A DNA stretch of 64,000 nucleotides, taken from contig JAMWBK010000008.1 in assembly GCA_029953675.1 (NCBI GenBank), positions 1,240,001-1,304,000 on the forward strand, in the 5' to 3' direction. This document shows, one piece after another, positions 5,613 through 44,620 of the stretch. The DNA comes from Rhodosorus marinus CCMP1338. Its lineage: Eukaryota > Plantae > Rhodophyta. Made by a program: the position numbers and the translations under genes. Numbering within the stretch: position 1 is the stretch's first letter; each line of letters starts with the position of its first letter. Under the pieces are notes generated by a model. That model saw only the letters and a program-made list of their open reading frames with translations, ran no database searches and was not told where the DNA came from.

Positions 5613-5869
5613 AGTGACTGAGGTGAACGATGAAGGTGTTTAACGGTTGCGTGTTGATCTTGCTTAAAATCCAGTCAGTCAATTTTGTAAATGATTGACC
5701 TCCTCAATCAACTCTTTTTTCTCGTCGATTTTTTTAGCCACCAATAAACACATTCAGTCAATCAATATCAATGTTTTTGTGGTATATCCGAGAAATACAT
5801 TCATTCAATCAACATGTGCCGCGGAAATTGTCGGAATTCTGTCCTGTCATTGAATGAATCTTTGAATAC

Positions 5870-6420
5870 GAAAAACGAATTGCTTAGTTGGAGCTACAAT
5901 AAGAAAACCGCGAGGGGAAAAAAGACTAAGCGCCACGAAGGTCGAGTGCCTCCAAGATCAACGTAGCGTTCATACGGCACAACAAGAAACTCAATCGGGT
6001 AAATGAATGAATGTTAAGTTGGAGACTAAAAGTATAAAAAAAACCGCGAGGGGAAAAAAGACTAAGCGCCATGAAGGTCGCGCGCCTCCAGGATCAACGC
6101 AGCGTTCATACGCCACAACAAGAAACTCAATCGGGTAAACAAGGAATGAAGATGGTCCGGGCGTTCGGGGAAGACCTCTCGAGCACGTCGGTTGCAACGA
6201 TACAACTGAATGAATGGGGCGTGGAAGGTGTTACAAGAGCTTTTCGGAGCTGGGCAATCACGTGCATCTGCACGCTTCGCCAGCCACCGCCAACAGTGAT
6301 TCGGTAGCGAGCGGAACCAATAGGTGAGCCGTTGACCGCAGCAATATCGATAGAGCAAAAGGGAGCACTGGAGAACACCTCGAGGCAGCCGATTCAGCTC
6401 CGACACGAGCTGACGGTGCT
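5870..6420 (-). mobile_element. Lineage C fragments: internally deleted copy plus a tandem second 3' end
   Basis: LVSELNRLPRGVLQCSLLLYRYCCGQRLTYWFRSLP (post-RT region) is joined close to RERPDHLHSLFTRLSFLLWRMNAA. The terminal ~120 bp occurs twice head-to-tail. Confidence 0.75.
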
Positions 6421-6429
6421 ACTCAGAAA

Positions 6430-9400
6430 CTGTAGTCAGAGCTTACGTTGATATGTGAACCGGTTATTTGTTAGCTGGGTTGGGCGCGATTGAGTTTGTT
6501 CGCGATCTTCGTGTGGGCAGCCATCTTTCTGCGGCTGTTCCTCGCCTTTCCCGGCGTTTCCGGGTCGTCCGCGAAGGGGTTTTTGGGTTGTTCTGGTCTG
6601 GGAAGGTGGTTCCGGTACGGGATTGGTCTCATCTTGGCGTTGCTGTTTTACTCGGCGATATTTCGGTCATCGGCGGTGCTTGTGGGGTACAACTGCGCCA
6701 CTCTTCCCCCAGCGTCCCTCTGAATTTCCGCTTCAGATGGTTTCGTCAACTGCCTCTCCGCAGGCAGTGGAGCTACGACTCGGGAGATTCGGCACACTCG
6801 CCCAGCTGCCAGGTTGCACCAAGGCTACTGCGGAAGCCTTTGTTGTCCGAATTGCTCGCGCTGTTGCTGCTGCTGCTGAAGCCAACCGCCTCGCGGAGCT
6901 GGCTTCCACCCTGACTGCTTTTGCCGATGCCCAGTGCCCCGGCGCCACGACGGCGGCCGCTGATGTCCCACTTGCGCGTGTCCCATCAGGGACAAGCGCG
7001 GTTGCGACAGGTGTCCATGAGACAGCTGTCCTCCCGAATCGATCTCTTCTGGCCGACTCTCTGTGTCTGGTCCCGTGCCCCCTGCCGCCGCTACCCGCCC
7101 GGTGCGGCCTTCCTACTCCCAAGTGCTCCGCCGTGGGTCCGTCGAGGTCCGCGCGGAGGCCCTGGTACGTACGTTACCTGCTGAGCCTGCCGTTGACTCT
7201 GTTCAACGGATCATATCTCCTCCCCGCTGGGTCTTGATGGCCAACGTGCGACCCCAGCGCTCCTCGCGCTCCGGGGCCCGCATTCCTGTTCGCGATTTCG
7301 TGACACGATGGCCTCGTGTCTCGGCGCGTCGCCCCGCGATTTTCTCTACGTTGATTTTTCGGGACCCCAGCTTGCTTCTTGGTGACAGATACGGCGCACC
7401 AAATCCTATCTACTTCGTTGAAAACGCCTCCTGCGCAGAGACCTGTTTTAGCGAATAAGGTTTTGACACGCGCCCGTGTTTCTTTAATGTTCGATTTTGA
7501 TCGTTTCGCCGCGGAATCCCTCGCCCCTTCGGATCTCCTTGGCGCTAGCGCAGCATTCATTCAGCGCAGAGGACATTCTGACCTTGCCGGTCTCGGCCCA
7601 TTTTGAACGGCTTTCAAGGGTTCAGAAAAACCTGCTAGATCGGCTCCCAAATAGGGGTTTCTTCCATGCTGCGGTCCAAGATTTCCTTGCCTCGGAGACT
7701 TCGCTTTTGGAGAATCATCCTGACTTTGCTCCCGCTGGGCGAATTTCTGTCGGTGCGGAGCCTTGTGACGACGTGGGGGAGCTACCTTCTATGGATGTAA
7801 ATGTCGATCCAGAGGTGGACCCGCTCGCCATTGAGCCGAGCACCCCTTCGCCCTTTGGCGTCCGGGGGAGGGTCTCCGGCTCCTTAGGGGCTATCTATGC
7901 ATCCCTCTCCTCTTTGCGTGCCCCTCCGCTCAAGCGCCCTTTCTTGGCGCCAGTTGCGGGGGGAAATTCTTCTGATTCCGTTGCGGATTCGCATCCCATA
8001 AACGCTTCCTCCGTGGTGAGGGAGCAGGATGTCTGAGTCTTTTAGGGAACATTGCGAGCTTCCTGCTTTCTTTCCGAGCCCAGGTGGCTTTGAGGACTGG
8101 CGTTCTCGCCTTTTCTCTTGGTTCGAAGGTTTTGTTGGGCGTTTTCCTTCTGCGTATATCCCTCTTTGCCCTCGTTCGCCCCCAGTCTCTCTCCCTCATC
8201 GTTGGTGAGGGTTTCTTTTCTTTTGGATTTCCTGCTTATGGAGGTGGCCGACCATCCTCAAGCAGCACTTGCTTGGAAGCTTTTGTTTGTTTTTCCTCGG
8301 CTAGCGCTCACGGTCTCCCAGGGGCGCGATGCATGTCCAATTAGACGCAAAGTTCAGTCTTTTCTGGCGGGGGACTTTGCTTTCTTAGAATCTTTATACC
8401 TCGCTAGTGTCTCTTCTTCCTCTTCGTTCGGGACTTCACCTTCTTCCCGTTCCCGTAGGCAGGTATGGGCAAAGGCAGCAGTGGCACAGGGGGATATTCG
8501 GCGTGGGGCGGCCATCCTCCAGCAAGGCGCTTCAGTCGAGCCGTATCGAACTGACCTGGCTGATCCAGTCGCCGCGTTGTTCCCCGCGCGCGACGTGAGT
8601 TGGAACTCTGAGTTCCAGCGTGTCTTAGATCCTTTTGTCGATTCCTCACGCGGTAGGGGTCGGTTGCTTGTCCGGCCGGATGAGGTTCTGGCTCTGCTTA
8701 GGTCCGCCCCGAAAGGTCGTGCACCTGGTCCCTCAGGACTCCGGGTCGAACTTTTTCACTGGTTGGGTGAAGAAGGGCTGGACGTCTTTGCGCGGGTACT
8801 GGAGGGTCTTTTCAATGGGGACGATTTTTGCGCAGAGGCCTGGGCACTATTGTCGCGCTCCCAACTGGTCCTCTTGCCCAAGCCTGGACATTCAGGCCAG
8901 ACACCTTCCCTTCGGCCAATCGGGATGTGCGAAGCATTGCGGAAGCTGGCGAGCCGCTTTCTATCGCGTCAGCTCACTAGGGAGGCCACGGGTTTTTTGG
9001 GTTGACCCGGGTCGGTGTCGGCTATTCAACTGGTGACGCGTATCCTGCAGCTACGGTCTCCTTGATGAGCCCTTGGGCACGCTTTCTGTGGATTTCGCCA
9101 ACGCGTTTAACAGTGTGTCTCGAGCACACGCGCTTGAGGTAGTTCGTCAGCTTTTCCCCTCTGGCTTCCCGTTCTTACGCCGCGTATATGGTGAAGCGCC
9201 GAACGGGTCCCGATTTGCCACCTTGGGTGCCGAGAGCCACACCTTTGCGGCTCATACGGGTGTGCAGCAGGGCGATCCCTTAGGGCCGTTCCTGCACGCC
9301 TGTGGATTGCAACTGGTGCTGTTGCGGCCGAAACATCAGTTCCCGCGGGTCCGTGCAGTCGCCTTCCATGACGATGTAACGCTTCTTGGCACTCCCGACG

Positions 9401-9742
9401 ATCTGGTGCCGGCCTACGATTTTCTCGGCGAGGTGGCTTCCTTGGTGGGGCAGCGCATTAACCATGCCAAGTGCGATTTCTGGGGGGGTCTCACTGCACC
9501 TTGGACGCGGTTCCATCCAGGTTCAGAGATATTTGGCGAGCTGAGGGCTTCCTTCTGTTCGGTGTCCCCATAGGCACCCCGATATTTGTTGAACGCAGCC
9601 TCTCCGCGCTCCTGAGTCATCACGATGAGCTCCTGACTGAGCTGTGCAGTCTCCCAGAAGGGTACCTCCAGACCGCTCTGCTCATCTTCCGGTTCAGCGC
9701 GTGCCAGAGGCTGACCTATTTTTTGCGGCAGCTACCCTAGGT
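6430..9742 (+). mobile_element. Lineage C CRE-like non-LTR retrotransposon, 5' region and RT, frameshifted, 3'-truncated
   Basis: RT motifs GRAPGPSGLR, LRPIGMCEALRKL, VDFANAFNSVSR, GVQQGDPLGP, AFHDDVTLLG across ORFs 8118-9005, 9073-9573 and 9471-9740. The 5' boundary is approximate. Confidence 0.85.
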
Positions 9743-10542
9743 ACCTGGCTGCCAGACTTGCCAACGAAACACAGACGCGGCCTGAGTAGCGGGGAACTGA
9801 ACCTGAGCCTGCGACAACTGATGGGATTGACGCTCCCGGGTGTACGAACACTACGTCTACGATCTGTTCACAGTAACATGACGCTGCAGGCATTCAATGC
9901 CTCCACAACTGCACCAGCTCTACAGGGAGCTGGACACTTCGGCACAACATGGTCAGGGACGCACTGGCGACACAACTGGGACAATGGCGACTAGAAGTGA
10001 CAGTAGAACCGACTGGACACTACTAATGCAGTCGACTCCGCCCTGACATCCTAGCTCGACACCCACGGACAGGCAAGCTCCCCGTCATCGATGTGAAGGT
10101 GACCTCGCCGTTGCAAAGAACACACATACACAAAGCGTCTTGGGAGACCGGGTATGCGGCGCACAAAGTGGAAAAGCTTAAAGAGTCCAAATACCGTGAC
10201 AGTATCGGAGAACACAATGACAACATCTTCGTGCCCTTCTGTCTGGAAACCTTTGGGCAGATGGGAAAATAAGCGGGTGAATTCCTCAAGGAAGTGACTG
10301 TACACCTGGATAAGAGGGAAACGCAAGCAAGTGAGGCTCGGGCGATTTTGAACCGCACTCTGAGGAAAGGAAACGCCTTGCTCGCCACCCAGGCTCGTCG
10401 TGTCGACGAAGCAGACTACGAAATCGTCCCTTTCTCATACTGTAGCCACACAACCCATTAGGGGTTTCTTTGCTGACCAATAGAATCCTTATTCCTTCTT
10501 AATGAGCTCCAATAGGGAGGAGCTCTTCAGTAAAGTGTACAC
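9743..10542 (+). mobile_element. Lineage B CRE-like element, 3' part (RLE domain and 3' UTR)
   Basis: GTWLPDLP..ELNLSLRQLMGL, LRHNMVRD, LRPDILARHP..IDVKVTSP, FVPFCLETFG. The 3' UTR ends agtaaagtgtacac directly before the 16-bp repeat. Confidence 0.85.
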
Positions 10543-10562
10543 GGTTACGTTAGTCTGGGGTT
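10543..10562 (+). repeat. Telomere-like repeat (G-rich on +)
   Basis: ggttacgttagtctggggtt. Confidence 0.85.
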
Positions 10563-10566
10563 GAAT

Positions 10567-10638
10567 TCCTTCGTAGTCTAGTGGCTAGGATAGCGGTCTC
10601 TCACACCGTTGGCCCGGGTTCGATTCCCGGCGGGGGAA
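10567..10638 (+). tRNA. tRNA-Glu (anticodon CTC)
   Basis: Folds as a cloverleaf: TCCTTCG/CGGGGGA acceptor stem, D-loop AGTGGCT, GCGGT-CTCTCAC-ACCGT anticodon arm, CCGGG-TTCGATT-CCCGG T-arm. No encoded CCA; TTTT lies 4 nt downstream. Confidence 0.92.
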
Positions 10639-10646
10639 TAAGTTTT

Positions 10647-11571
10647 AAGACCCTCTCGAGAGAGGCACACCACACTGCTTTCACCCGGCTGGTCACTTAT
10701 CCCCTAGTCGACCCCGAACACAGAGCTCGAATCCGCTCCGCAGCAGGAGCCGGTTCAGGCATCTGGCTCAGGGATTTGCCTCAATTTGACCCCCCTGAAA
10801 ATTGAGTGGTAAGGGCATGCACCTGAACATACGAGAGTTGTCTGGGCTCCCGATTCCGGGATCGCCGAGCACGGAAAAGTGTACTACGTGCAATAGTACG
10901 CGCCGTACAAACAGCGTACAAAGATTCCTCATTGTCAGACTTCGACTGGGCTGTGGCAATGGCGACATGATAAGATCTGCACTGAGCTGGCGCGCTGGCT
11001 TAACAGATGGCACTTCAGAGACGTTCAGCAAGAACCTACAGATTACTTCACAAACTCGAATCTGAGACCGGATCTGGTGACTGTCCACCCTCGAACATGG
11101 CAAAGATTTGCGATCGATGTGCAGTGGTGTCACCCCTACAGGCAAGATACCTACCCAAGAGCAAAGACAATAATGGATACTCAGCGAAACAGGCGGAGCG
11201 CTGGAAACTTGCGCACTAGAAGAAGGCTATGGCGACAGAGCATCCAGATGACAAACTGATTCCGATTGCTATTGAAACCTTCGGGAGGACTGGTCAGATT
11301 ACACAGGATTTCCTACGGGAGGCTGCGGCCACATGCTCACCAAGCAGTACGAGTTGAGCAATGTGAGGGCTCAACTACACAGGACATTTTGGTCAGGGAA
11401 AGCAGAGCTTGCTTTAGGGGCTTTGCGTGTGGATCAGTCGGACCAACCACTGATTTTTCTTTTTATCGTAGCTAGCGACCCCGGGTTGCTGGGGATAAAC
11501 CCAACAATCTTCCCTAGATAGTGATAGAACTAGTCTTGCGCTGCATTAGGCAGTTGCCCAGTAAAGTCTAC
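10647..11571 (+). mobile_element. Lineage A 5'-truncated element (zinc knuckle, RLE, 3' UTR), decayed
   Basis: KTLSREAHHTAF..HRARIRSAAGAGSGIWLR, RPDLV, IPIAIETFG. The terminus gcattaggcagttgcccagtaaagtctac matches the lineage A 3' end. Confidence 0.85.
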
Positions 11572-11904
11572 AGTTACACATGTATTACGACATTCAGGTC
11601 CGATATTTGCACACCCAATCGGACAACTTTTTATCGGATTGAAATGGCAACCATAGCTTAGCCAATGCCATGTGTGGGCTGTGAGGTTCTTGCTTAGGAC
11701 AACAGTCTCATCTCTAAACAAGTCTCTATTTGGATGCTTTCATGTAGCAATCGGGGTCCTTTGAACACACTCATATCTTCTTGTGCATATGGAAGTCACT
11801 TTACTGGCTCCTGCGGGTGAAGAATATATTCCACAGCTTTCTTGATCTACGTACGAAACGTACTGCATTGTTTCGGAGTGTTTGCATACGTAGAACGTAA
11901 AGTT

Positions 11905-11961
11905 TTACGCTAGTCGTAAACGCTAGTCTGCAGTAGGCAGCTGCCAAGTGAAGTTTACGGT
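11905..11961 (+). mobile_element. Degenerate 16-bp repeats plus a ~30-nt lineage A 3' terminus
   Basis: ttacgctagtc...acgctagtctg followed by cagtaggcagctgccaagtgaagtttac and ggt. Confidence 0.6.
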
Positions 11962-12391
11962 CGCGGGACGCATTCGCAAAATCCATTGTTCTCGCTATTG
12001 GCGATTGCAACCTAAGGCAGAGGGATATAGGAAGAAAAAGGGCCGAGTCCGTCATAGTCGAAGGGTTGAAGAAAAGTGAGTCCACAACGAGAGCAAAATA
12101 GTGAGCAGGAGTGTCATAAGGTCGGAGGGGAAAGTTCATCACGTACCTCAGATGCGCTTGAGCAAGGAAATTCGCTATGGAGGCCACACAGGTTAGTCTG
12201 TTCGTCAATGCACGAGGTACTCGAATTGCAGCAACCGCATATTATATCGTCCACATCTCTTGACAGAAAGCCCGAAAATCCACTCTAGACGAGGTTAGTA
12301 GACGCACAGATGCCCGCGAGGTCCAAGTAGAAACGGATGCACACTTCTGTCAGACTTGTTCTGCAAACGCAGCTTGAGCATTTCCTTGGAC

Positions 12392-13215
12392 TTACGCTGT
12401 TGTTGCAGGTTCCTCCAATGGGGAAGCACCTAAAGTCCACGACAAAGCAGAACCCCAACGGGCACTGGATCTCGCAAGAGCATGTTCCGTCATCAGCTCT
12501 GACGGGACTCTACCATGGAGAACGCATTTATAAGAGGTACAGCCAGGACGAAGTAAGCCAGCAGCAAATGGTTTACAATCTTCGTTCGCAGCATTTCCCA
12601 TCAGAGGTTTAACGGAACTCACCTCTTCGGCAATAGAACAATTGAAGTCTGCAGTGTTAATACAGTCGGTAGAGCCCTCCGAAACGCATGTATCCGTAGC
12701 CGTGCATGCGCAAGCACAGAAACCATTTTCGTCTCTGAAAGTCTCAGCCGCGCGTTGCAATTGAAATTCGAATAATTGACGCACTGGTTATTTGTCTCCA
12801 AAACGCATGTACCCTCAGCCTTGCACGCGCAGGCGCATTCCCCGTCTTGATCAATCAGCACCTGGCGTTGTTAGAACCGGGGACGGTCTCGTCTCAGTTT
12901 GTTTGCATTGTCCCAGGGAAGGAGTGGGTGATTCAGAAGGTGGACTAGTACTTACCGAAAAGCGCGGGCAAAGAGGTTCATCAAGTCCACGGCACGTGAA
13001 GCCATCCCAGCACGAATCCCCTCCACAACATGCGCAGAATTCATCACCTTCTGGAAGGTATGGTACCTATCACGTCAGAGAGGTTGGTGCAACTTGTCAG
13101 CCGTTTGCAACACGTTCACTATCCCCCAGATTGTAAAGCATGGAATAACCCCAAGCGCGTTTTCTGAAGCAAACCAGTCCTGATGGACTCAAGGCCTTCG
13201 TGATTCGTTAAAGGT
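12392..13215 (-). pseudogene. Frameshifted Cys-rich, Ser/Pro/Thr-linker continuation of the 13216-13896 gene
   Basis: Fragments EFCACCGGDSCWDGFTC, STSPPSESPTPS, GECACACKAEGTCV..CVNYSNFNC and GFCACACTATDTCV..CINTADFNC lie in different frames. Confidence 0.55.
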
Positions 13216-15460: not shown

Positions 15461-16535
15461 GTGCTCTGTGTAGTCACTGTCGGGCAAACCATACGAAAAA
15501 TAGGTTTGGTATCTAAAAAATGATTTGCTGGGAAATTGTACTGAAATTTTTCTTCCGCAAAATGTAGCAGGCTGAAGCAGAGTCCTTACGTATCAGTTTC
15601 AGTTTCAAAGAGAGCAGTGAGTTGAGTGCAGCCAGCGGCAGTTTGGATCCGAAACTTTGCAAAGCTTAAAAGCATAATTAATTCTTCTAAACTGAGGTTT
15701 CCTGAAGACGATTGGATAACAGAATATTTCGGAAAAAAGGAGATTAGAACCGGTGTCCAAATAATTTTAATGATACAAACGTTGCTTTTGTTTAATGATA
15801 TTAAGGTTGAGAATCGTTGTGGACTACTTTGCTGTTGGAACATGCACATATTATCATCATCTCTCGATCTGAAGTACGTGCATTGTCAGCAACACGCAAT
15901 GTAATACACAACGATTCTCAACTTTAATATCATTAAACAAAAATCGTATACAACCACCGATATTAGCTCACTATTCACGAAAAGGGTAGTATGATTGAAT
16001 GATTTATATTCTCGACAAGAGAGTTGTGGTGTGTAGTCTCTGTGGGGCAAACCACACGAAAAATAGGTTTGCTGATCTAAAAAATGATTTGAGGGGAAAT
16101 TATTCTGAAAGTTTTCTTCCGCAAAATGTAGCAGGCTGAAACAGAGTCCTTATGGTACAGTTTCTGTATAAACGAGCCCGCTGAGTTGAGGGACAGTGGC
16201 AGTTTGGATCCGACATGGTCCAAAGTTCAAAATCAGAAAAGCATAATTAATTAAACCAATTTATTCTTCTTTGCTGAGGTTTCCTGAAGACGATTGGATA
16301 ACAAAATATTTCGGAGAAAACGGGGATTAGGACTGCTGCCCAAATAATTTTAATGATACAAACGTTGTTTTTGTTTATTGACATTCAATGTTGAGAATCG
16401 TTGTGGATTGCTTCGTTGTTGGACATGCACATATTTCCATCCTCCTAAGGGCATACAAACTACCGAAATTAGATCACTATTCAAGAAAAAGGCGATATGA
16501 TTGAATGATTTAGATTCTCGAGAAAAGAGTTTGTT
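15461..16535. repeat. AT-rich diverged tandem duplication, period about 563 bp
   Basis: tgtgtagtc..gggcaaacca.acgaaaaataggtttg starts at about 15467 and 16030, with collinear similarity through both units. Confidence 0.85.
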
Positions 16536-16605
16536 GGATCAATGTGTCCAACGAAAAGTAAGGATGGGACTTTTTTAAGCCAGGGGGGGATTTCTATCCT
16601 CCCGA

Positions 16606-16666
16606 TGTGTACCACTGCACCAGCTCTACAGGGAGCTGAAACCTGCGCCACAACATGGCCCGGGAC
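16606..16666 (+). mobile_element. Short internal fragment of lineage B
   Basis: cactgcaccagctctacagggagctg...gcgccacaacatggcccgggac matches about 9905-9960 and 43490-43540. Confidence 0.75.
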
Positions 16667-16718
16667 GGGTTACGTTAGTCTGGGGTTGCCTTAGTCTGGG
16701 GTTACGTTAGTCTGGGGT
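16667..16718 (+). repeat. Three tandem telomere-like 16-bp units (G-rich on +)
   Basis: GGG TTACGTTAGTCTGGGG TTGCCTTAGTCTGGGG TTACGTTAGTCTGGGG T. Confidence 0.9.
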
Positions 16719-19700
16719 CGCGAGTGTCCACTGATGGCACAGGCCAGGATACCGAGACGACTCCGGCAGCCGTAGAGGCTCCACAGGGCAACACTGCACC
16801 CCAGGCCGACCACACTGCCACCCATCACGCGATGGACACACAGGACAGGCAGGAAACACCTACGCAATAATGTCCAGCCGACAAAGGGGAATCAAGCGAA
16901 GACGCGACGAGCCTCTATTCCCCTCGGATCGTCAAGCCTGGGTTAAACGGTGGACAGACTTCGTTGACCAAGTTACGACGGGAGGCAGGCATTGGACGCG
17001 CCTTACTTGGCTCGGGGACTGACCCAGATCGAAGCAATCGCACGTGGAGTAGGTCTAACCGTGGAACCCGAAAAATGCCGTTTTCTCGGCCCGCGTGAAG
17101 TTTCGAGGGGCTCCCTGCCACCTAGTCTCCGGGCCCTTGGTGAACATGCGGGGCTCGAGCACCATGGCGTCGGTTTTGGGAGTGACAACTTTGTCCATGA
17201 CTCTTGCGACGAGTTTTAGCGCGCCATAAGCAGCTCACCGACGCCATTGAGCGCCTACCGGATAGCATGCTCCAATCGGCCTGCCTGCTCTCCCGCTTTT
17301 GTGCCGGCCCCCGACTGAATTACTGGCTGTGAAGCCTTCCACCGCACTGGGGCTCGTGGACGGCAGCCAAGGCGGACGAGGCGACGCTGAAGCACTGGGG
17401 AACGCTCCTGGATGAACCCCTGGATGTGGAAGCGGCTCCTGACAGGGACCTAATTCGTGGCCAGATTGCCCTACCTTTACGATTAGGCGGATTTGGAGTG
17501 GCCGACCGTGGCCTAGTATGCGCGGCAGCGGCGGCGGTCGCCTCCTGGGCTACTGCGCTTCGCACCTTGGTGAGTTTTCGGATGCGAAGTGCTTGCCTTT
17601 TGGCTAGAGCACTGACTAGCGAAGACCCCGTGACCCTTCCGCCGCCGCTTTTGAGTATCTATGATGCTCTGCAACAGGCGTTCAGCAAGTGCAACGCCGT
17701 GCCGGACCAGAGCCGATCCAGATTTCGATCCTGGAAGGAGCTGTTATGGGGACGAACTGAGGCGCTCGAGGACTCTCCCATCGACAGAGTACTCGCCGAC
17801 GAGGGGGAAGCTAGCCCCGGGTCACCGGTTGCCGATTACCCGGGTCTGAGCCGATTGTGGAGCTCGCGCACTGATGTGATACAACATAGCCTCACCTGGG
17901 GCCAACGCAGTGCCGCTCACGCAATCTTGCTCAACTCTCCACTCACACCGCCTACCACCGCCGCTCGCCTCCGCGGCACGGGAGGCCATCTTTCACATTT
18001 GTGGCTAACGACCCTGCCGTCATCACTGGGTCACCGTCTGGATGCCTTCCAGTTTCGCTCTGCCACACGGATTTACCTGGGCGGGGAGGACAATCCTCAC
18101 GCGGAACTCCCTTGTAACCCTCCGGAGCCACCTCAAAAGAAGCGCCAGCGAGTAACCGCTGCTGGCCTCGGACCAGATACTGAGATGACTCCCGCCACAC
18201 TCGAGTCCCCGCAGCGGGTCAACACTCTGAATACTGCATCGGACACACCTACGATGGACACACAGGACTGACAAGAAGAAGACCTATCATAATGCCGACA
18301 CGACGCCGCGGGATCAAACGCCCACGAGAAGAGCCTCGGTTCTTCTCTGATCGTTAGGCCTGGATCAGCCGTTGGAATGCCTTCGTCGACGAGATTACGG
18401 AGGGGGGCATGCAATGCACTCGCATCACCCAATGCCCGGTACCCACCAGGCGCTTCGTACCCCGAGCACACGTTTCTACATCGAGCCGGCTTCTTCGTGC
18501 TGCACTCGAGCTTTCGATGGACCATACTGCACCGCCGCAAGCCAGCCTGCTTCTTGTAGGACTCCCTGGTTTGGTATTTGGACAATCGACACTTGCCATC
18601 GGCGTGCAGGTCGCCGATGTGCTAGACGGAGACTTCCACCAGGTCTGGACCGACCTCGAGGGGAAGGCCGCATCGCTGACGCCGTCTAGCGCACCACAGG
18701 GAGCCGAAGCCGTTCGTCGCCGAGTCACTGGGCGCCGAAAACAAGCGCTGAAACTCGCACGTCTTGGTCGCCTCTCGGATGCTGCAAGAAGACTACAGGC
18801 TAAGGAAATGGCTCCTTTCACAGAAGCTACCTGGCGGCAACTGCAACAACTCTTCCCGAGCCCTGCTGACGTGGATTGCCCTGCCGAAATCTCGGATGCC
18901 CTAGAAAGCCTACTCAAGGCGGACGACGACACTCTGAAACAGCGGTGGGGTTCAAGAAAGGCAGCTGACGAGGGCCTCCTATCAATTGTAGCACGTCTTC
19001 CTCAAGGGAAGAGCCCCGGCCCCAGCGGCCTGCGTGCGGAACACCTGCAAGGCGCGAACCAGCATACTCAGGTCGCACTGATCCGGGTCTTGTGCCAACT
19101 CGCGACTACTCCGGAGAGATTCTCACCCCTTCTGACACGCGCCTTGCGCAGCAGTAGGCTCCTGCCGTTCGCTAAGCCAGCACAGGGGACTGACTCCCAG
19201 GTAAATCCAGGCCTCCGTCCAATCGGCGTGCCGGAGGTTTTGTGAAAGGTGGCCACTCAGTGGACACTGCGAGCGGTGATGAACCGGGTTAGAGAGCTTT
19301 TGGTGCCCCTACAACTGGGGATTGGGGTCAGCGGTGGGTGCGAGCGGTCACTTCACGCCATCCAGGCCCACCTATCATGTGAACCTGACTCGGTAGTACT
19401 CCGCCTGGACCTCGCGAACGCGTTCAACCGAATAGATCGGCGTATCGCCAAAAAACTGGTGGATCAGAACTTCCCGGAGCTCGCCGCGGTTTCTGCGCTC
19501 GACGCAGAAACCGGAGTTCAACAGGGAGATCCATTAGGGCCGGTGCTACACGCGCTCTCCCTCGCCCCCTTCCTTAAGGCACAACCATCGTCGCCATCCA
19601 CGACGTTATCACTCTGGTTGGAGCGCTGCCTAGACTCAAGGAGGCACTACTCTGGGGACAAAGCTTGCTACCTTGCCTCGGGGCCCGCTTTCAACGCAGC

Positions 19701-20345
19701 AAATGTAGCCTCTACGGACCATCGCTAACGACAACGAGCTTAGTCAACCGTGCGATTCCTGGCGTGAAAGTGACCAGGGAAGGCCTCTCGATTCATTCTA
19801 TCCCGATAGGGACCCGACACTACATCGAAGACGAGTGCCGGCGGCTACAGAACCAGCACGAGGCGCTGTTCAAAGAGATCTCGAGGCTACCAACAGAGGA
19901 ACTGCCCATACAGCTCGCCCTGTTCCGGTACTGTGCTGAAACGCGTTTGGACTACACTCTAGGATGCCTTGCCTACGCATTTGGACGAGCTCTGGCCCGA
20001 GAGGCGGACAACATGACGTGATGTCACCTGGAGGTCTTGTTCGGCGGCCTCTCTACCACGGCCTTCGCCGAGGACGAGTTAGTACACCCGGTCAACGAGC
20101 GGATGTCGCTACCCTGCCGATGGGGCGGATTGCGGCTCGCGACACGTACGCGGATACAGCCGACTGCGTTCTTCTCAGCATGGGCGCAGACCTTGGGAGA
20201 CCATCAAGGCCAGTGGCCTTATACAACGGAGATACAGCGGCAGGTTGGGCAAGCGGGCGCGGTACACACAGGTCGCCTAGGCCGCATCCAGGTGTCAACA
20301 GAGCAGATTGGAGAGCAACTACGAGCGTCTGCTCGTGCCATTAGG
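16719..20345 (+). mobile_element. Mosaic of CRE-like fragments: lineage A (16719-~16980), C-like post-RT segment (~16985-18080), lineage A RT region (~18082-20345)
   Basis: C-like part: QIALPLRLGGFG, SRTDVIQHSLTW. Lineage A part: GKSPGPSGLRAEHL, RPIGVPEVL, LDLANAFNRIDR, GVQQGDPLGP, LPCRWGGL. Cut off at about 20345. Confidence 0.8.
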
Positions 20346-22876
20346 TGGCGCCAAAAAGTTGCCGTGAAGACTGGATCGCGATCTGTGACAAAACTCCGTG
20401 GAAATCCGAACCAGGCGACGATATGTTGCAGGATAAGTGTTGCCACTCCTTCCGCGGTTTCCATTTTCGTCGTCGGGATAAATACGGCGTACTTCGTGAG
20501 TCGATCGACCACAACTAGTATAGCGTCATTACCCGCGATACTGGGAAAGCCTGTTATGAAGTCCATAGTCCAGTCGACCGCGCGATTCTCCGGAATTGCG
20601 AGCGGTTGCAGCTCGCCCTGGTTGCGCCGAAGTGGTTGTTCACGGGCGCATATCTCGCATTGTTGTACGCGCGTGAAAATGTCTTTCCTCATGCTAGGCC
20701 AGTAATAGCGTCGTCGCACAACACGGTAAGTAGCTTGTGCGCCGAAATGGCCTGCCGTTAGAGACTGGTGGTGCCCATCGATGACCTGATTAACACGGCG
20801 TTCGGGTACGCAAAGTCGTGCATGGAGGAATAATAGACCCTTTTTTCGTTGGAAACCCTCAAACTGGTCCGGGCTTCGAAATTGCGTGCAAAATTCTGGA
20901 TCGGCTTGGTACTCTGGAGTCCAATCGGCTTCCATCGTTACGCGGGTGGCTCGTAGTGCGTCGCGACTCAGTGCATCCGTGACGTTTATCTTGCCGCGTA
21001 CGTATTGAACCTCAAAGGAGTAGGGTAGTAATATATTCACGTACCGCGCCTGCCGACGAGTTAATGTCGTCTGTGTTTGCAAGAAGCGTAGCGGGTTATG
21101 GTCCGTACGCACAGTGAACTGTTGCCCATCAAGATACACGGACCACCTGCGGATGGCCAGGACGATGGCGTAGAGTTCTTTCTCGTACGTACTGTAGCGT
21201 TTCTCGGTACTATTGAAGGATCGGGACATGTACGCCACGGGCACCTCCTGATCCTGGCGGGTCTGGAATAGGATAGCACCCACCCCGGTGTCGCTCGCGT
21301 CAGTTTGCACGATGAAGGGGAGGATCGGATCAACCATGTACAGCATGGTGGTTGCTGATATGGCGGATTTTAACCCATCAAAGGCTTGTTGTTCGTCCGC
21401 GTGCCAACCCCACTTCTGGTCCTTCTTCGTTAGCCTGTGGAGGGGCGCCGCCACTTGGGCGAAGTGTGGTACAAAGGGGCGCAAGAAGTTCGCGAAACCC
21501 ATGAAGGCCCGTAGCTCCTTAACCGTCATTGGCGTCCTCCAATTCTGAATTGCTTTGACCTTCTCCGGATCGGGACGTCGAGTGCCTCCCGCCAAGATTT
21601 GGCCTAGGTAGCAAACTTGGCGTAATCCAAAACCGCACTTCGAGTATTTGACGATCAACTGATGCTGCTCAAGGCGTCGTAGCACCTTTCGAACATCGTC
21701 CTGGTGTTGTATGTCATCTGGGGAATATACCAGAATGTCGTCAACGTATAACACCACGCACTGGTTGAGAAGATCATATAATACGTCCGTCAGGTAGCGG
21801 ATGAATGCCGAGCGCGCATTCTTCAACCCAAACGGCATGACATTCCATTGGTACTGTCCGAAGCACGTGACAAAGGCCGTCTTCTCGCGTGATGCCTGTT
21901 CAATTGGCAACTGCCAATATCCCGAGCGAAGGTCTAACGTTGTGAAAACCCGAGCGCTGCTCAGGGTATCCAATAGCTCCTCCACTCTAGGCGGGGTCGT
22001 TCTTTCTCGCACGGTGATCTGGTTCAAACGGCGATAGTCGATGCAGAGGCGTCGCCCACCGTCTTTTTTGTCCACGTACAACACAGGTGCAGCATACGGA
22101 CTTCTGCTCCGTGAGATAAATCCTTGCTCTTCCAAGTCGTGCAATTCTCCTTGTAGCCGCTCTCGGTCGACCCGTGACATCGAATATGCGCGTTGAGCTG
22201 GTGTACTCGCCCCTGGTTGCAATTCGATTTTGAGTGCATATCGTTGCCGGTTCTTCGGTGGCAACGGCAATATATCTTGGAAAACTTGGGGAAACTCTTT
22301 CCGGATGACCGCACCAAGCCTCTTTCCTGGGTCGGCAACCTGGTCCTTTCCGCCTTTCTCTAGGCCTTCCTCTTTCCGGATGACCGCGTCAGACCTCTCC
22401 CCTATTTCTTCCTCAGTTTCCATACTTGTTATCCCACGCATGCTGGTGTCTTCCGCTCCCAATACCATCTGTAGGGGCTCCGCACTACAATCGATAGTTA
22501 TTCGATGTTGCCTCAAGAAGTCGAGACCTAAGTATACATCATGGCTTAGATGCTTGAATATTCGCAGCTTCGTCTTGAATTGTCGTCCCTGGAGTGTGAT
22601 CGTTGTCTTCGTCACTCCGGGGCTGATCACGGTCTACTCACCGACAGCCAACCCGTATGTCCGTGGCTCGTCGTACCTCGGTAGGTTGGCGGCTTTCGCA
22701 AAGTCCTCTCTAATTGTCGTCACCGCACCGGTGTCGATGAGACATTCCACCGGTTCCGCTGCCACCACGCCTATTGCAGTTAGGCTTGCATTACCCCGTT
22801 GCTGCAACCCAACGGTTGGGATGCTGGTCGCTGGACTCTCGGACGGCATCCCTCGTCCGGAGTCCGTCCGTTTTCC
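20346..22876 (-). pseudogene. pol: Gypsy pol (protease, RT, RNase H, partial integrase) with an in-frame TAG at 22634-22636
   Basis: LIDTGA, RLCIDYRRLN, LDLRSGYWQL, MPFGLKNA, YVDDIL, VQTDASD, TDHNPL, H..GHFG..CEIC, VDWTMDFITG, SFVTDRD. Confidence 0.93.
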
Positions 22877-23687: not shown

Positions 23688-23894
23688 TGTTAGAACTCTT
23701 CTAACCAACTTGTCTTTACTTAATTCTAGGTCTCAAGATCTAGCAAAGCTAGGTCTTATATAGTCTTGGTTACTGTAAACTAAGACGTACCTGACAGTAA
23801 AGTAGAAACTGTTGGATACTAGCACACGAGCGTCTTACACCAAAGTAGGGAGTGTCTTACACAGATTACACAGCTCTTAGGGCAAGTTCTAACA
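23688..23894 (-). repeat. 207-bp LTR
   Basis: TG...CA ends with a 9-bp terminal inverted repeat TGTTAGAAC/GTTCTAACA; TATATAAG on the sense strand at 23762-23755. Confidence 0.9.
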
Positions 23895-26238
23895 GGGACG
23901 ATCGCTGCGGGGACAGCTGTCCTTGCCCCAGCGGTCAACTCGACCCGAGCTCCTGGGGCCGATTCCTCGGTATCTGGCCCTGTGCCCCATGTTGCTCCTT
24001 CTCGCCCCGCGCGTCCTTCCTATTCCCAAGTCCTCCGGCGTGGGACTGTTGAGGCCCGAGCGGAGGCCTTGGTAAGTGCTTTCCCGCCTGAGCCTGCAGT
24101 TGATTCTGTTCAGCCCACACTCTCTCCTCTGCGTTGGGTCTTAATGACCAATGTGCAACCCCAGCGCTCCTCGCGCTCCGGGGCCCGCATTCCTGTTCGC
24201 GATTTTCGAGACACCATGGCCTAGTGCCTGGGCACGTCCCCTCGCGATTTTCTCTACGTTGATTTTTCGGGCCCTCACACTCGCTTCCTGGTCTCCGATA
24301 CCGCTTATCAAATCCTCTCTACGCTGTTGAAAACGCCTCCCTCACAACGGCCGGTTTTAGCGAATAAGATTCTGACTCGCGCCCACGTGTCCCTCGTGCT
24401 TGATTTTGACCGTTTTTCCTCTGACTCGCTTGCGCCTGCGGATCTCCTTGGCGCGCCCGAGGACCTTCTGCGATCCGCGATTTCGGCGCATTTTGAGCTT
24501 TCCCGCGTTCAGAAGAACCTTCTCGACCGGCTTCCAACTCGGGGCCTTCTCCACTCCGCTGTCCATGAATTCCTTGTCTCTGAAACTTCGCTTTTGGAGA
24601 ACCATCCTGATTTTGCTGAGGTGTTCCCAGTGGGGGGTCTCTCTGCGTGCGTAGAGCCTCTGGCTGTGGTTGAGCCTTCTGCCATGGATTTTGCTGGCGG
24701 GGATTCGGAGGTGTATCCGCTCGCCCTCGAACCTAGTATCCCCTCGCCATTTGGCGTTCGGGGTCGTGTTTCCGCGGTTCTGGAGGACGCGTAAGCGTCC
24801 TTGACTTCTTTGCGTGGTCCTCCGCCCAAGCGTCCTCATTTGACGCAAGTGGCGGGGGCGCCTTCCTCAGCTTCCCCTACGGATTCACATCCAGTCCACG
24901 TTTCCTCAGAGGTGAGGGAGCAGGATGCCTGAGTCCTTCCGGGATCACTGCGAGCTCCCTGCTTTTTTTCCCAGCTCCAGTAGCTTTGAGGCCTGGCGTT
25001 CTCGCCTTTTCTCTTGGTTCTCGGGGTTTGTTGCTGGTTTTCCCTCTGGGGAAATCCCCCTTTGCTCTCAATCTCCTCCGGCTTGCCTTGCTCATCGGCT
25101 GCGCCGGCGCGTGTCTTTTCTCTTGGACTTTTTACTGATGGAGGTGGCCGACCACCCTCAGGATGCACTTGCTTGGCAACTCCTGTTTCTTTTTCCTCGG
25201 CTAGTGCTCAGTGTCTCCCAGGGGCGCCAATCCTGTCCCATTAGACGTGAAGTCCAGTCTTTCCTCGCAGGGGACTTTGCTTTCCTGGAATCTTTGTACC
25301 TTGCTAGTGTGTCTACTTCCTCTTTGTGTTCGACTTCGCCTCCTCGTTCTCGTCGACAGGCTAGGGCAAAGGCAGCAGTGGCACAGGGGGATATTTGGCG
25401 GGGGGCGGCCATTCTCCAGCAACGCGTTTCAGTCTAGCGGTGTCGAACTGAACTTGGCTGACACAGTTGCCGCATTGTTTCCTGCGCACGACGTGAGTTG
25501 GAACCCTGTTTTCCAGCGTGTCTTAGATCCTCATGTCGCCTCCACGACTGACGCGGGCAGGTTGCTGGTTCGGCCTGAAGAGGTTTTGGCTCTTCTTGGG
25601 TCCGCCCCGAAGGGTCGTGAACCGGGTCCCCCAGGTCTCCGGGTTGAGCTTTTGCACTGGTTGGGCGAGGAGGGCCTCGACGCCCTTGCGCGAGTGGTGG
25701 AGGCTCTTGTAAATGGGGACGATTTTTGCGACGATGCATGAACCTTACTTTTGCGGTCGCACCTGGTGCTAGTGCCTAAGCCTGGGCATTCGCGCCAGAC
25801 GCCCTCCACGCCCCATCGGGATGTGCGAGACCCTGCGCAAGTTGGCGAGCCGTTTTCTGTCTCGCAGGCTCACTAATGAGGCACGGGGTTTCTTCGGCCT
25901 GACCCAGGTGGGTGTGGGCTATTCGGGCGGCTGTGAACTGGTGACTCGCATCATGCAGTTGGACAGCCTCGGGGAGGAGCCTTTCGGTACACTTTCGGTC
26001 GATTTTGCGAACGCCTTTAACAGCGTGTCGCGTGTTCACGGGCTCGAGGTGGTTCGTCAGCTCTTCCCGTCGGGTTTCCGTTTCTTGCGCCGGGTTCTAG
26101 AAGGGCCAACTTGCCCTCTCCTTGTCACCTTGGGTGCAGACAGCCAGAGCTTTGTGTCACAGACGGGTGTTCAGCAGGGAGACCCCTTAGGGCCTCTTCT
26201 GCACGCATGTGGATTGCAGTTGGCGCTGTTGCGCGTGC
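23895..26238 (+). mobile_element. Lineage C copy 2, 5' region and RT (interrupted at about 26239)
   Basis: Collinear with about 7020-9330: RPSYSQVLRRG, LSRVQKNLLDRLP, VDFANAFNSVSR, GVQQGDPLGP. Confidence 0.88.
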
Positions 26239-26239
26239 C

Positions 26240-26741
26240 ATGATGTTTGTATAAAATGTCCTGCTTTCTACGAAATCCCTGCTCCCCGTATTTTACTGCT
26301 TCCGGGTATACTGCTGCGAAATCAGGATCTTGTAGATATGCTCCGGTCCAATCTTCTTGGGGTAATATACCGGAGACCGCCAGCTGGTTGATCGCTCCTC
26401 GGCTGAGAGGGTCTACGATATTTTCTGCTCCCTTCTTGTATTCGATATCAAAAGTAAACGGCAGGAGTCTATTGACATATCTTGCCTGTATATCTTGCCT
26501 GTATGTCAATAGACTCCTGCCGTTTACTTTGGATATCGAATACAAGAAGGGAGCAGAAAATATCGTAGACCCTCTCAGCCGAGGAGCGATCAACCAGCTG
26601 GCGGTCTCCGGTATATTACCCCAAGAAGATTGGACCGGAGCATATCTGCAAGATCCTGATTTCGCAGCAGTCTACCCAGAAGCAGTAAAATACGCGGAGC
26701 AGGGATTTCGTAGAAAGCGGGACATTTTATACAAACATCAT
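26240..26741. repeat. Fold-back inverted duplication: 240-bp arms, 22-nt spacer
   Basis: 26240-26479 is the reverse complement of 26502-26741 with at least 6 mismatches. The spacer contains a short tandem duplication (tcttgcctg twice). Confidence 0.92.
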
Positions 26742-28429
26742 CGTGTTTGTGTGCCGCGGAAATTCGTACCGCACTTACTGCGAAAACACCATGATGAACC
26801 AACCGGAGGACATCTTGGGCTTCATAAAACGGTGAACCTGTTGAAGCGGCGATATTATTGGCGGACCTTACGAGATGACGTCCAGTCCCTGATACAGAAA
26901 TGTGAGACATGTCAGCGTCAGAAACCATTAAGGGCGGCTCAGGGGCTTTTACAACCTCTGCCAGTACCAGAATCAAAGCTACAGGATATCTCGATGGACT
27001 TTATTGTCAGTCTCCCGATGACGGAATCCGGACATGACGCAATCTTGGTAATCGTGGACCGATTCTCGAAGTACGCGAAGTTTATCGCGACCAGAACGGA
27101 TGCAGACGCCCGTATGACGGCAGAACTGTTTTTCGAACACTGGGTGCGTTTTGCAGGCTTACCGCGAACATTTGTCTCCGATCGCGATACGAAGTTTACC
27201 AGCCTATTCTGGAAACAATTAATGGGTAAGCTTAAGGTCAAGACTCACCTAAGTACGGCCTATCACCCGCAGACGGACGGACAAACAGAGCGGGTCAACC
27301 AAACCTTGGAGACTTACCTCCGGTGTAACAGTAGCCAAGCGTCATGGGACTCTGATCTTCCCAAGGCGGAGTTGGTCTACAACACGCAGATTTCGGAGTC
27401 TACTAAGTATTCGCCCTTCGAACTTCTGTACGGACGAAACCCTGAGCTACCGGGATCCTTAATAGTACCACGTGCAGAAGAAGCTACCCCTACGCCTTTA
27501 CCTGATGCAGCGGAAGTTCTTCTACAACATCAACACGACCAATACCTGGAGGCGCGGAACAACATGCTTTACGCTAAGCAAATCCAGAAGATGCGGTATG
27601 ATGCGAGGCGGCGAAACCCTGACTTTACCCCCGACGAGCTGGTATTATTATCGATCAGAAACCTGCCGTTGCAAGACTCTAAACCGTTTCGACCGCGTAC
27701 ATCGGCCCTTTTCGACCGCGGTACATCGGCCCTTTTCGCATCAAACGGAAGATAAATGATGCCGCCTATACGTTAACGTTGCCAGCAGGGATGAAGATAC
27801 ATCCAACGTTCCACGTTTCCCTGCCGAAGAAATTTAGGGGAAACCGCAACAACGTTCAACTGAACATACCCGATTTTGCAGCTGAAGTAACGGGAGGCGA
27901 AATCAAATCCGTACTTGGTCATCAGATGAAACCAGAGGGAACCAGCGAATATATGGTATACTTCGAGGGGGAAACAGTAGCTGATGCTCGATGGATTGCA
28001 GCTCACCAGTTGCCACAAACCTCTGCTACAAAAAGGCAAATTCGCTACTACATGAACTTTCATCGTGCTGCTGAATCTGCCCGACCCCGCGCTTCTTCTT
28101 CGGTGGGAGGGATGTGACGTCTCCACCTTCCAGCTATGTCCGGCTATGCAAAATTATGCTCGGGCTGTGCCAAAAACTCTGGAGGTGCAACACCCTTTTG
28201 AGCTTAATAGTTATTGCACATCCCGATGGAGCAAGAGTATAAGTACGATGGGCAAACTCGATATTTCCCAGGTTAGCTGGAGAGAAGAGAGACAAGATAG
28301 AGAAGAACAAGATAGAATTGGGATATATTTCCTAATTTGGGAGTAATTAGGGGGGAATAAAACTCGAAATATGGAATAATTTGAGTAATACCCAGCTGGC
28401 AGTTTGAGACGTAAAATCTGGTCCCATCG
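26502..28429 (+). mobile_element. Chromovirus (Ty3/gypsy) 3' fragment: RH end, integrase, GPY/F motif, chromodomain, PPT, LTR, PBS-like motif
   Basis: HHDEPTGGHLG..CETC, ISMDFIV, VSDRDTKF, GQTERVN, RYIGPF..IHPTFHVS, chromodomain-like EIKSVLGH..EYMVYFEG..ARWI. PPT ggtgggaggga at 28102-28112; LTR about 28113-28416. Confidence 0.9.
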
Positions 28430-32451: not shown

Positions 32452-32484
32452 AACCCCAGACTAGAACCCCAGACTAACGTAACC
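32452..32484 (-). repeat. Telomere-like repeat tract (C-rich on +)
   Basis: aaccccagactag aaccccagactaacgtaacc. Confidence 0.9.
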
Positions 32485-37232: not shown

Positions 37233-37295
37233 CAGACTAACGTAACCACCCCCCAGACTAACGTAACCCCAGACTAACCCCAGACTAACGTAACC
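37233..37295 (-). repeat. Telomere-like repeat tract, about 4 units with variants
   Basis: cagactaacgtaa ccacccccc agactaacgtaa cccc agactaa cccc agactaacgtaa cc. Confidence 0.92.
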
Positions 37296-38807: not shown

Positions 38808-38827
38808 AACCCCAGACTAACGTAACC
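38806..38827 (-). repeat. Telomere-like repeat
   Basis: ctaaccccagactaacgtaacc. Confidence 0.9.
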
Positions 38828-43233: not shown

Positions 43234-43255
43234 CCCCAGACTAACGTAACCCCAG
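43234..43255 (-). repeat. Telomere-like repeat
   Basis: ccccagactaacgtaaccccag. Confidence 0.9.
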
Positions 43256-44094: not shown

Positions 44095-44100
44095 GTTACG

Positions 44101-44600: not shown

Positions 44601-44620
44601 CCCCGGACTAACGTAACCCC
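44601..44620 (-). repeat. Telomere-like repeat marking the right boundary of the retroelement field
   Basis: ccccggactaacgtaacccc (one mismatch to consensus). Confidence 0.85.

Follow-up and report, generated by a model that had tools for sequence, protein, structure and literature searches.

A short G-rich repeat at the junctions of restriction-like-endonuclease LINEs in the red alga Rhodosorus marinus

Repeat-associated LINEs and the Rhodosorus locus

In Bombyx mori, the long interspersed nuclear elements (LINEs) SART1 and TRAS1 of the R1 clade insert in a fixed orientation into a short tandem repeat, and the 3′ end of SART1 is joined to the G-strand repeat. The 3′ ends of other LINEs, such as Dong/R4 with its (TAA)n, Waldo, UnaL2 and CR1, consist of short tandem units that vary in number, match the target or priming site and are subject to slippage, and in UnaL2, CR1 and Dong such tails exist without a telomere link. 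LINEs equipped with a restriction-like endonuclease (RLE) are almost always site-specific. Here, we investigated a 64-kb stretch of the Rhodosorus marinus CCMP1338 genome (hereafter, the window; GCA_029953675.1, JAMWBK010000008.1, positions 1,240,001-1,304,000 of 2,117,290 bp), which belongs to a nuclear genome assembly of 17 contigs (PMC10250338) and in which a G-rich 16-mer, TTACGTTAGTCTGGGG, recurs between and beside RLE-type LINEs. An initial annotation, made from the sequence of the window, had proposed that this motif is the host telomere repeat. Our analysis suggests that it is probably the junction repeat of site-specific RLE LINEs, acting both as their insertion target and as their 3′ tail.

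LINEs of the RLE type that target telomeres have been described as MoTeR1/2 in Magnaporthe oryzae, FoTeRs in Fusarium oxysporum and Cnl1 in Cryptococcus (PMC7367193, PMC12857005). Judged by the features compared here, MoTeR and FoTeR appear to be the closest known analogues of the R. marinus elements. In both systems, a reverse transcriptase (RT) is combined with a C-terminal CCHC/RHD/E/(R/K)PD/D endonuclease (PMC7367193, PMC12857005), full-length and 5′-truncated copies are arranged head to tail with very short G-rich tracts between them and the repeat at both ends, and internal ‘relics’ keep the repeat at their 3′ end, with breaks or healing at interstitial tracts. The two systems differ, however, in orientation and in the repeat unit: the fungal elements face the chromosome end with their 5′ end, so that their sense strand is the C strand, whereas at L035, an R. 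marinus locus near the end of contig 7 that is described below, the 3′ end points outward and it is the G strand that is the sense strand; in addition, the fungal TTAGGG unit is replaced here by an irregular 11-16-nt unit, putatively telomeric, in a red-algal host. Because the rule that every telomeric MoTeR or FoTeR copy turns its 5′ end to the chromosome end is broken by all copies in L035, which point the opposite way, the R. marinus LINEs should not be filed as MoTeR/FoTeR-type.

In having their 3′ end joined to a G-strand repeat, the R. marinus LINEs resemble SART1, although SART1 and TRAS1 carry an N-terminal apurinic/apyrimidinic (AP)-type endonuclease, have poly(A) tails and insert into a proven (TTAGG)n telomere target. 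With UnaL2 and CR1 they share a conserved stem-loop near the 3′ end and, after it, terminal repeats whose number varies; in contrast, the units of UnaL2, CR1, Dong/R4 and Waldo are regular and 2-8 nt long, UnaL2 and CR1 have an AP endonuclease and no site specificity, and none of these elements has a 16-nt T2A..G4 unit. The system works like telomere- or microsatellite-specific LINEs and is, by its domain content, of the RLE type; what may surprise in it is limited to the telomere identity of a 16-nt irregular unit, if true.

The motif and its place at LINE junctions

Nine of the 11 motif sites in the window lie at junctions of retrotransposons that lack long terminal repeats (non-LTR retrotransposons), in an internal region 0.8-1.3 Mb from either end of contig 8, in agreement with the fallback offered by the initial annotation, namely an element-associated terminal or target sequence. 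The 3′ ends of the LINEs read ...AGTAAAGTTTACGG, with the general form ...AGTAAAG-N5-AC(G/A)G, and continue into TTAC in seven of eight cases and into full (TTACG)TTAGTCTGGGG units, on the sense strand and in the same register, in five of eight; the number of terminal units ranges from 0 to 4. Three 3′ ends, namely those of LINE D (ACAG|TTACA), of a copy ending at 44100 (ACAG|TTACG) and of a fragment ending at 11960 (ACGG), lack TTAGTCTGGGG. On the other side of the elements, the motif stands immediately upstream of all three that keep a 5′ untranslated region (UTR) and the start of ORF1 (A and GC in the window, and L035-Z, itself cut off in ORF1) and of four of the six 5′-truncated ones (B, F, L035-8740 and L035-W). 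The repeat is thus present on both sides of the elements in a fixed register despite 5′ truncation, with the motif directly upstream in seven of about 11 copies. Random insertion would not be expected to place it upstream of so many elements. Since the registers are fixed on both sides and independent of the point of 5′ truncation, the elements appear to use a sequence-specific endonuclease that acts on the repeat.

The exact 16-mer is common to LINE families that are only 30-75% identical and shows no drift with the element bodies. Some 15 nt ahead of the 3′ end, eight copies from at least three families retain a 5-bp hairpin, for which one compensatory pair lends weak covariation support. 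At the 5′ end, the UTRs of A, GC and L035-Z have diverged too far for an alignment to reveal element-encoded variant repeats. Irrespective of what comes next, 10 of the 12 arrays of the window and L035 end in ...GGGG(T/TT), and their downstream flanks have only TT in common.

Exact copies of TTACGTTAGTCTGGGG number nine in the 64-kb window, as opposed to none in 100 dinucleotide-preserving shuffles: four are on the + strand (starts 10545, 16670, 16702 and 59205) and five on the − strand (32467-32482, 37251-37266, 37278-37293, 38810-38825 and 43234-43249). They are joined by a copy with one mismatch, TAGTCCGGGG (44601-44616, −), and by the solo 11-mer TTAGTCTGGGG at 49416-49426 (+), the latter being the partial copy reported earlier at that place; a further TTAGTCTGGGG at 32278-32288 (−), situated within an ORF and free of other motif features, is a possible chance match. 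The unit TTACG TTAG TCT GGGG contains 6 T, 6 G, 2 A and 2 C, and thereby has the TxAyGz-like, strand-asymmetric make-up of telomere repeats. Its constant core is the 11-mer, with TTACG (or TTGCC, TTC) as an optional spacer, and every unit closes with the GGGG run that the initial annotation had pointed out. Tandem Repeats Finder describes 16667-16718 as 3.2 copies of period 16 with 88% matches; the variant unit TTGCCTTAGTCTGGGG lies there at 16686-16701, an 11-mer TTAGTCTGGGG and an extended G run (GGGGGG+TGG) occur inside 37233-37295, and units TTCTAGTCTGGGG and TTCCGGGG inside 32446-32482. All variant units listed previously, including the extended G run, were recovered, as was the motif at each of the nine places named, with coordinates 0-18 nt off. 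Of the earlier description as a tandem strand-asymmetric repeat, the asymmetry of the unit and the short tandem tracts hold, but the tracts lie on both strands and reach at most ~3.5 units, with no long oriented array in the window.

We assign the elements to the RLE-type LINEs because their coding sequence combines an RT with a C-terminal RLE signature (CCHC...RHD...E...RPD...D), while domain searches of the element ORFs and N-terminal parts found no AP endonuclease/Exo_endo_phos domain. The LINE RT domain was recognized by profile search (RVT_1, E 1.4e-9), the closest PDB sequence matches of LINE A are LINE-1 ORF2p and the R2 RT, and the homologues, mostly unnamed metagenome proteins, carry RT-domain annotation. 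The endonuclease region of copy A matches that of R2 (9nl2_A) with E 4.6e-5 in a full-length search and 0.019 alone, CX2C..HxC, R-H/Q-D, E, RPD and DVTV being aligned. In copy GC, the endonuclease reads CTRC-X12-HHC-X9-RRHD..EQEPD..RPDI-X14-DVTV, which fits the restriction-enzyme-like (REL) endonuclease consensus quoted for SLACS, CRE, MoTeR and FoTeR, with the CCHC halves spaced wider than in that consensus (PMC12857005). The best-preserved copy, LINE A, has the RT motifs RPIGVPE, LDLENAFNRIDR, GVQQGDPLGP and AIHDDITIVG, as well as a C-terminal CCHC plus RPD..D endonuclease domain. Among the LINEs of the window are 5′-truncated copies. To our knowledge, no such RLE LINEs have been described in red algae.

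Self-comparison and protein mapping identify the stretch from 7 to 44.6 kb of the window as a non-LTR retrotransposon island, in which at least four related families are represented, together with one Gypsy-type element. We numbered the motif arrays W1 to W9. On the − strand, from 44618 down to 29738, the order is W5, an inverted relic, W6, LINE GC, W7, LINE B, W8, LINE A, W9 and a family-3 LINE, forming a 15-kb head-to-tail run with 1-3.5 units per junction. W5 (44601-44618; GG TTACGTTAGTCCGGGG, one mismatch) lies directly upstream of the rearranged relic (43252-44600), which consists of two endonuclease-region fragments in inverted orientation; its arms (43279-43387 and 44492-44600) are 80% complementary, and one fragment ends ...GACAGTTACG at 44100. 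W6 (43234-43251) is a single unit directly upstream of the 5′ end of LINE GC, with no LINE 3′ end before it. LINE GC (38826-43233) is near full length, with an internal deletion of ~0.3 kb near 40350 and an intact endonuclease motif, and its 3′ end is separated by the single unit of W7 (38810-38825) from the 5′ end of LINE B (37294-38808), a 5′-truncated copy of 1.5 kb with the 5′ junction GGGG|TTAGACTATG. The 3′ end of LINE B is separated from the start of LINE A by W8 (37233-37293), ~3.5 units in the order 16-mer, 11-mer, 16-mer, GGTGG and TTACGTTAGTCTG. LINE A itself (32483-37232) is full length at about 4.75 kb, with at least five frameshifts and ORF1 at 36480-37187; its 3′ end, GCTGCAGTAGGCAGCTGCCCAGTAAAGTTTACGG, leads into W9 (32446-32482; TTACGTTAGTCTGGGG TTCTAGTCTGGGG TTCCGGGG), right after which the third-family LINE begins (29738-32445). 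The latter is 3′-truncated in the RT at ~29738, and its part 29738-30159 is 95% identical to L035 21449-21870.

The + strand carries a looser run (about 6987-29740), to which W1 and W2 belong. Copy 1 of the second family (about 6987-10544; RT and RLE coding sequence at 8562-10308, the two domains 30-36% identical to those of copy A) has the 3′ end ...CTTCAGTAAAGTGTACACGG and passes into W1 (10543-10562; GG TTACGTTAGTCTGGGG TT), a single unit 5 nt upstream of a tRNA-Glu gene. It is followed by the 5′-truncated LINE D of family 1 (10650-11578), which ends ...AGTAAAGTCTACAG|TTACA. W2 (16667-16717; GGG TTACGTTAGTCTGGGG TTGCCTTAGTCTGGGG TTACGTTAGTCTGGGG) is preceded by a 3′-truncated endonuclease-coding LINE relic (about 16560-16667) that breaks at ...GGGACG|GGTTACG, where intact copies have GGGACGCAC, and directly followed by the 5′-truncated LINE F (16718-17003); 16716-17003 is 94% identical to internal LINE sequence on contig 7 (L035 9622-9909). 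Further downstream are LINE E, another 5′-truncated member of family 1 (18100-20354; 56-65% amino acid identity to A), which is cut off at the Gypsy-type element, and copy 2 of the second family (23893-29740), interrupted at 26233-28433 and 3′-truncated inside the CCHC motif at ~29740. There the two runs meet tail to tail, both terminal elements being 3′-truncated, with no motif between them. Outside the island, the solo unit W3 (59205-59222, +; TTACGTTAGTCTGGGG TT) and the solo 11-mer W4 (49416-49428, +; TTAGTCTGGGG TT) have no adjoining LINE sequence.

In homologue searches, annotated R. marinus relatives of the LINE proteins amounted to three, from two loci (L035 and L036), with NDN08_004843 and NDN08_004844 located on JAMWBK010000007.1. 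L035 covers 2,188,318-2,210,882 of the 2,212,799 bp of this contig and stops 1,917 bp before its end. From its position 8657 onward it is largely LINE sequence, with five copies that all turn their 3′ end toward the contig end; the last is predicted, from a length comparison with copy A, to end ~0.5 kb before the end of contig 7. Its four arrays (at 8720, 20869 and 21416, plus variants) lie 1.9-13.8 kb from the contig end, some of them 3.5-3.6 kb and about 1.9 kb from it, all with the G strand outward, an orientation read at one end only, which may be a chromosome end, and with a one-in-two chance of arising at random. At L035 8657-8739, an 83-bp LINE 3′ end plus one unit (8720) directly precedes a 5′-truncated LINE. 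The array at 20869-20935 (CTGGGG, two 16-mers, TTAGTTTGTCTGGGG and TTATCTGGGG) stands before the 5′ end of L035-Z and begins at the break of a duplicated segment (...tacCTGG|GGTTACG), whose intact paralogue 8 kb upstream reads ...tacctggaggcc; such a microhomology junction is expected from de novo telomere addition and from 5′ end-joining of LINE cDNA alike. At 21412-21450, TTAGTCTGGGGTTACGTTAGTCTGGGG is followed by an inverted TAACCCCAGACT, before a 5′-truncated LINE. A perfect 10-bp snap-back, AGTCTGGGGT-A-ACCCCAGACT, in which a G-strand unit meets its own reverse complement, occupies 21428-21448, at the junction of a 3′-truncated LINE ORF1 and a 5′-truncated LINE. The locus L036 on contig 13 is an internal LINE island of mixed orientations with only degenerate solo motifs, so that one LINE cluster is subterminal (L035) and two are internal (the window and L036).

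Target, tail or telomere

In the mechanism that we favour, the RLE would nick the C-rich strand of the repeat at or beside GGGG^TTACG. The element RNA, whose 3′ end is of G-strand sense (...GGUUACG, optionally extended by more units), would pair there with the 3′-OH of the C strand, which would prime cDNA synthesis; this would be target-primed reverse transcription oriented as in Bombyx SART1. A cut in the second strand at nearly the same position would leave ...GGGG upstream, and each insertion would split the array, internalise part of it and add units, providing a new target at each 3′ end. Because each insertion would both split an array and bring units with it, elements would come to be stacked in one orientation with 1-4 units per junction. 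Slippage or different initiation registers could yield the variable number of units and the variant ones. The B junction, GGGG|TTAGACTATG, with its triplicated 45-bp segment, and the 10-bp snap-back of L035 suggest that 5′ junctions may form by microhomology-guided joining and snap-back synthesis. While the anatomy of the junctions is directly visible, we infer from it where cleavage occurs, what the 3′ end of the RNA is and how synthesis is primed.

Several observations weigh against this reading. LINEs D and E and copy 2 of the second family have no motif upstream, and TTAGTCTGGGG is missing downstream of D and of the copies ending at 11960 and 44100. Unique DNA and a tRNA gene come after W1, and W3 and W4 are solo units in unique DNA; at least some units must therefore have travelled with the element RNA or pre-existed as solo sites, and not derive from the splitting of an array. 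No target-site duplication was definable at the LINE junctions, and the proposed endonuclease specificity is deduced from junction phases only. The telomere link, for its part, is drawn from the orientation at one contig end, with its one-in-two chance, and from analogy. The 16-mer is absent from two R. marinus transcript contigs (L002 and L037), and in metagenome contigs of the Joint Genome Institute (JGI) it gave 32 single matches from unrelated samples, without arrays and at chance level; because the number and pattern of these matches are those of any 16-mer by chance, that scan is uninformative.

A different account of the same junctions would make the repeat a purely element-encoded 3′ tail, multiplied by RT slippage at initiation and with no telomere link, the copies upstream of elements arising when the RT, at the 5′ end of one RNA, switches to the 3′ tail of a second one, or from a preference for nicked DNA that matches the tail. 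The eel UnaL2 tail is (TGTAA)n, CR1 has 8-nt repeats, and R2 is a case of template jumping; similarly, the R. marinus LINEs have a conserved 3′ hairpin and then a short repeat of variable number. Consistent with a fixed RNA 3′ end, W1, W3 and W4 stop in a fixed phase (...GGGG+T/TT) before unique DNA, and the LINE 3′ end with one unit at L035 8657-8739, placed before a 5′-truncated LINE, is what a template jump would produce. However, five of the 12 arrays (W2, W5, W6, L035 20869 and L035 21416) have no LINE 3′ end before them and sit in differing registers on broken sequences, the motif is identical across families with 30-75% identical bodies, and both the T2A..G4 make-up and the outward orientation near a contig end would have to be coincidences. 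We regard a purely element-encoded tail as rather unlikely.

If the initial annotation is taken at its word, telomerase would have made the arrays on the spot, as healed breaks or fused telomeres, the variants would be stutter and the neighbouring elements incidental; this seems improbable. The microhomology junctions do resemble healing, the two LINE runs converge 3′ to 3′ at ~29,740 like fused chromosome ends, and W3 and W4 adjoin no LINE. Yet nine of 11 copies mark LINE junctions; of eight LINE 3′ ends, five run on into the repeat in a single register and another two into TTAC, which the healing of random breaks would not bring about; the region is 0.8-1.3 Mb from either contig end, and the longest array has ~3.5 units. 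Finally, we consider it barely credible that the motif is an ordinary minisatellite with dispersed copies, that it arose by chance, or that it is part of a multicopy host gene (rRNA, snRNA or tRNA) targeted by a site-specific LINE. RLE LINEs often target multicopy RNA genes, and the 5′ part of the tRNA-Glu gene (CGTAGTCTAGTGG) loosely resembles the motif (CGTTAGTCTGGGG); against this stand the shuffles, with no match in 100, and the facts that this tRNA is all that Rfam finds in the window and that the motif forms tandem units of variable number with no constant gene flank, the shared TT being all that the downstream flanks offer.

Long or irregular telomere repeats are known from fission yeast (GGTTAC(A)(C)G1-8), from Candida and Kluyveromyces (23-25 nt) and from red algae (AATGGGGGG and TTATT(T)AGGG). 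The R. marinus motif is likewise strand-asymmetric and terminated by a G run, and its heterogeneity is explicable by template registers: because each unit contains two TTA, skipping CGTTA turns the 16-mer into the 11-mer. It differs in that the copies seen are all interstitial and at most 3.5 units long. Compatible with a telomeric nature are at least three arrays that come after 3′-truncated sequences and show microhomology to them, a pattern expected of de novo telomere addition, and the contig 7 arrays, which, like all LINEs there, have the G strand outward. The five of 12 arrays without a preceding LINE 3′ end and the constancy of the motif across diverged LINE families point the same way, whereas the fixed array ends next to unique DNA fit an RNA-encoded tail and the elements are oriented opposite to MoTeR and FoTeR. 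By analogy, it is plausible, with chances that we judge about even, that the repeat is made by the host telomerase or is a close variant of such a repeat. The more specific proposal that it is telomeric, with an irregular 11-16-nt (TTACG)TTAGTCTGGGG unit that would be the longest and most heterogeneous in Archaeplastida, and was invaded by RLE LINEs in the SART1-like sense, is a tentative one, held with somewhat less than even confidence. What the initial annotation called the host telomere repeat is supported to the extent that orientation and junctions are compatible with it; the copies in the window, by contrast, are interstitial relics and not a working telomere. Because nine of 11 lie at LINE junctions in the internal region of a 2.1-Mb contig, they are not products made in place by telomerase at an end, and the variant units, ascribed in that annotation to telomerase stutter, are explained equally well by slippage of the LINE RT.

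Given that the LINEs of contig 7 point 3′-outward near its end, the tail-to-tail meeting at ~29,740 has the look of an ancient end-to-end chromosome fusion, a scar that we consider unlikely here; an inversion or a nested insertion may have had the same outcome. The canonical repeats (TTAGGG)n, (TTTAGGG)n, AATGGGGGG and ten others have no dimers in the window, L035 or L002. Red-algal telomeres are known to be atypical, and little has been documented about them (PMC7046594). In the genome paper, 12 contigs are said to have telomeres, with roughly 18 ends scored as telomeric, but the text and supplements give no repeat sequence (PMC10250338), and we found no R. marinus telomere sequence in the literature, where the motif appears in papers only as chance primer matches.

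If terminal, the repeat would offer a telomere motif for assembly validation in a group without any published one (Rhodosorus and other Stylonematophyceae), as well as a 16-nt template for seeking the telomerase RNA, in C-strand form, for example, CCCCAGACTAACGTAACCCCAGA. It would also represent an independent, non-fungal colonisation of telomeres by RLE LINEs, in the opposite orientation, and would bear on how often telomere targeting evolved. If it is an element tail only, it would belong to an ordinary site-preferring LINE family, useful for repeat annotation, the elements being almost all unannotated.

Further observations in the LINE islands

The RT active site of these LINEs is (I/Y)HDD (AIHDDITIVG at 34270-34300; YHDDVTLLG) and not the usual Y/F-x-DD. 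It is also present in L035 (14530-14545) and in P0063, a transcribed open copy of 840 amino acids from an MMETSP transcriptome. LINE B opens at its 5′ end with three tandem copies of an internal coding segment of 45 bp (38673-38808, LDYVLRCLAYEFGRT repeated), and the point where they start has microhomology (TTAG/AG) to the motif. LINE GC contains, in its ORF1 region (42593-42660, −), 3.5 copies of a 15-nt tandem repeat (GGGACAGTCTGGGGT) that reads as a WDSLG peptide repeat; it has AGTCTGGGG in common with the motif, by kinship or coincidence. The insertion at 26233-28433 in copy 2 of the second family contains an inverted repeat (26240-26479 and 26502-26741, 98% complementary and 22 nt apart), and this 240-nt hairpin overlaps the start of an ORF (26247-27755) with integrase zinc-finger and rve domains.

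Some other interpretations of these sequences were considered and rejected. The relic at 43252-44600 might pass for a terminal-inverted-repeat (TIR) transposon whose 18-bp target duplication would be the motif, but its ‘TIRs’ are inverted copies of LINE endonuclease-coding sequence. A Helitron reading, prompted by the 3′ hairpin, is at odds with the encoded RT and RLE and with the 5′ truncations. An apparent shared 5′ boundary of three copies first grouped as the second family proved to be an artefact, the DNA similarity starting at conserved HHC(T/P)S(S/T)TG codons. The tRNA-Glu(CTC) gene (10566-10639; Rfam 59.6 bits) is wedged between LINEs, with a LINE 3′ end and the motif 5 nt upstream and a 5′-truncated LINE ~10 nt after it; a CCA is not encoded, and a T-run terminator follows 7 nt after the gene, which led us to reject a tRNA-derived short interspersed nuclear element (SINE) or a retro-copied tRNA.

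The two solo sites are both antisense to genes on the − strand: W3 lies ~40 nt past the point where the N-terminal ORF of an Exo_endo_phos (CCR4-like) gene starts, and W4 ~240 nt upstream of the start of an RWP-RK gene (49174). Their positions near gene starts recall the ‘telo-box’ promoter elements of plants, an analogy that may mean nothing in a compact genome. In L035, segmental duplications with 97-99% identity (11550-12636 and 19786-20872; 15663-16918 and 19069-19743), all within 11 kb of the end of contig 7, involve 5′ and 3′ parts of a fourth LINE family, which has a tail of its own, (AGTAAAGYC)n, at 16906-16994. At the beginning of the window, ORF 4809-5612 contains a 258-bp tandem duplication (5063-5592; 2.1 copies, 98% identity) that is apparently unrelated to the motif, and inverted repeats (1554-1727 and 5865-6182) flank this region.

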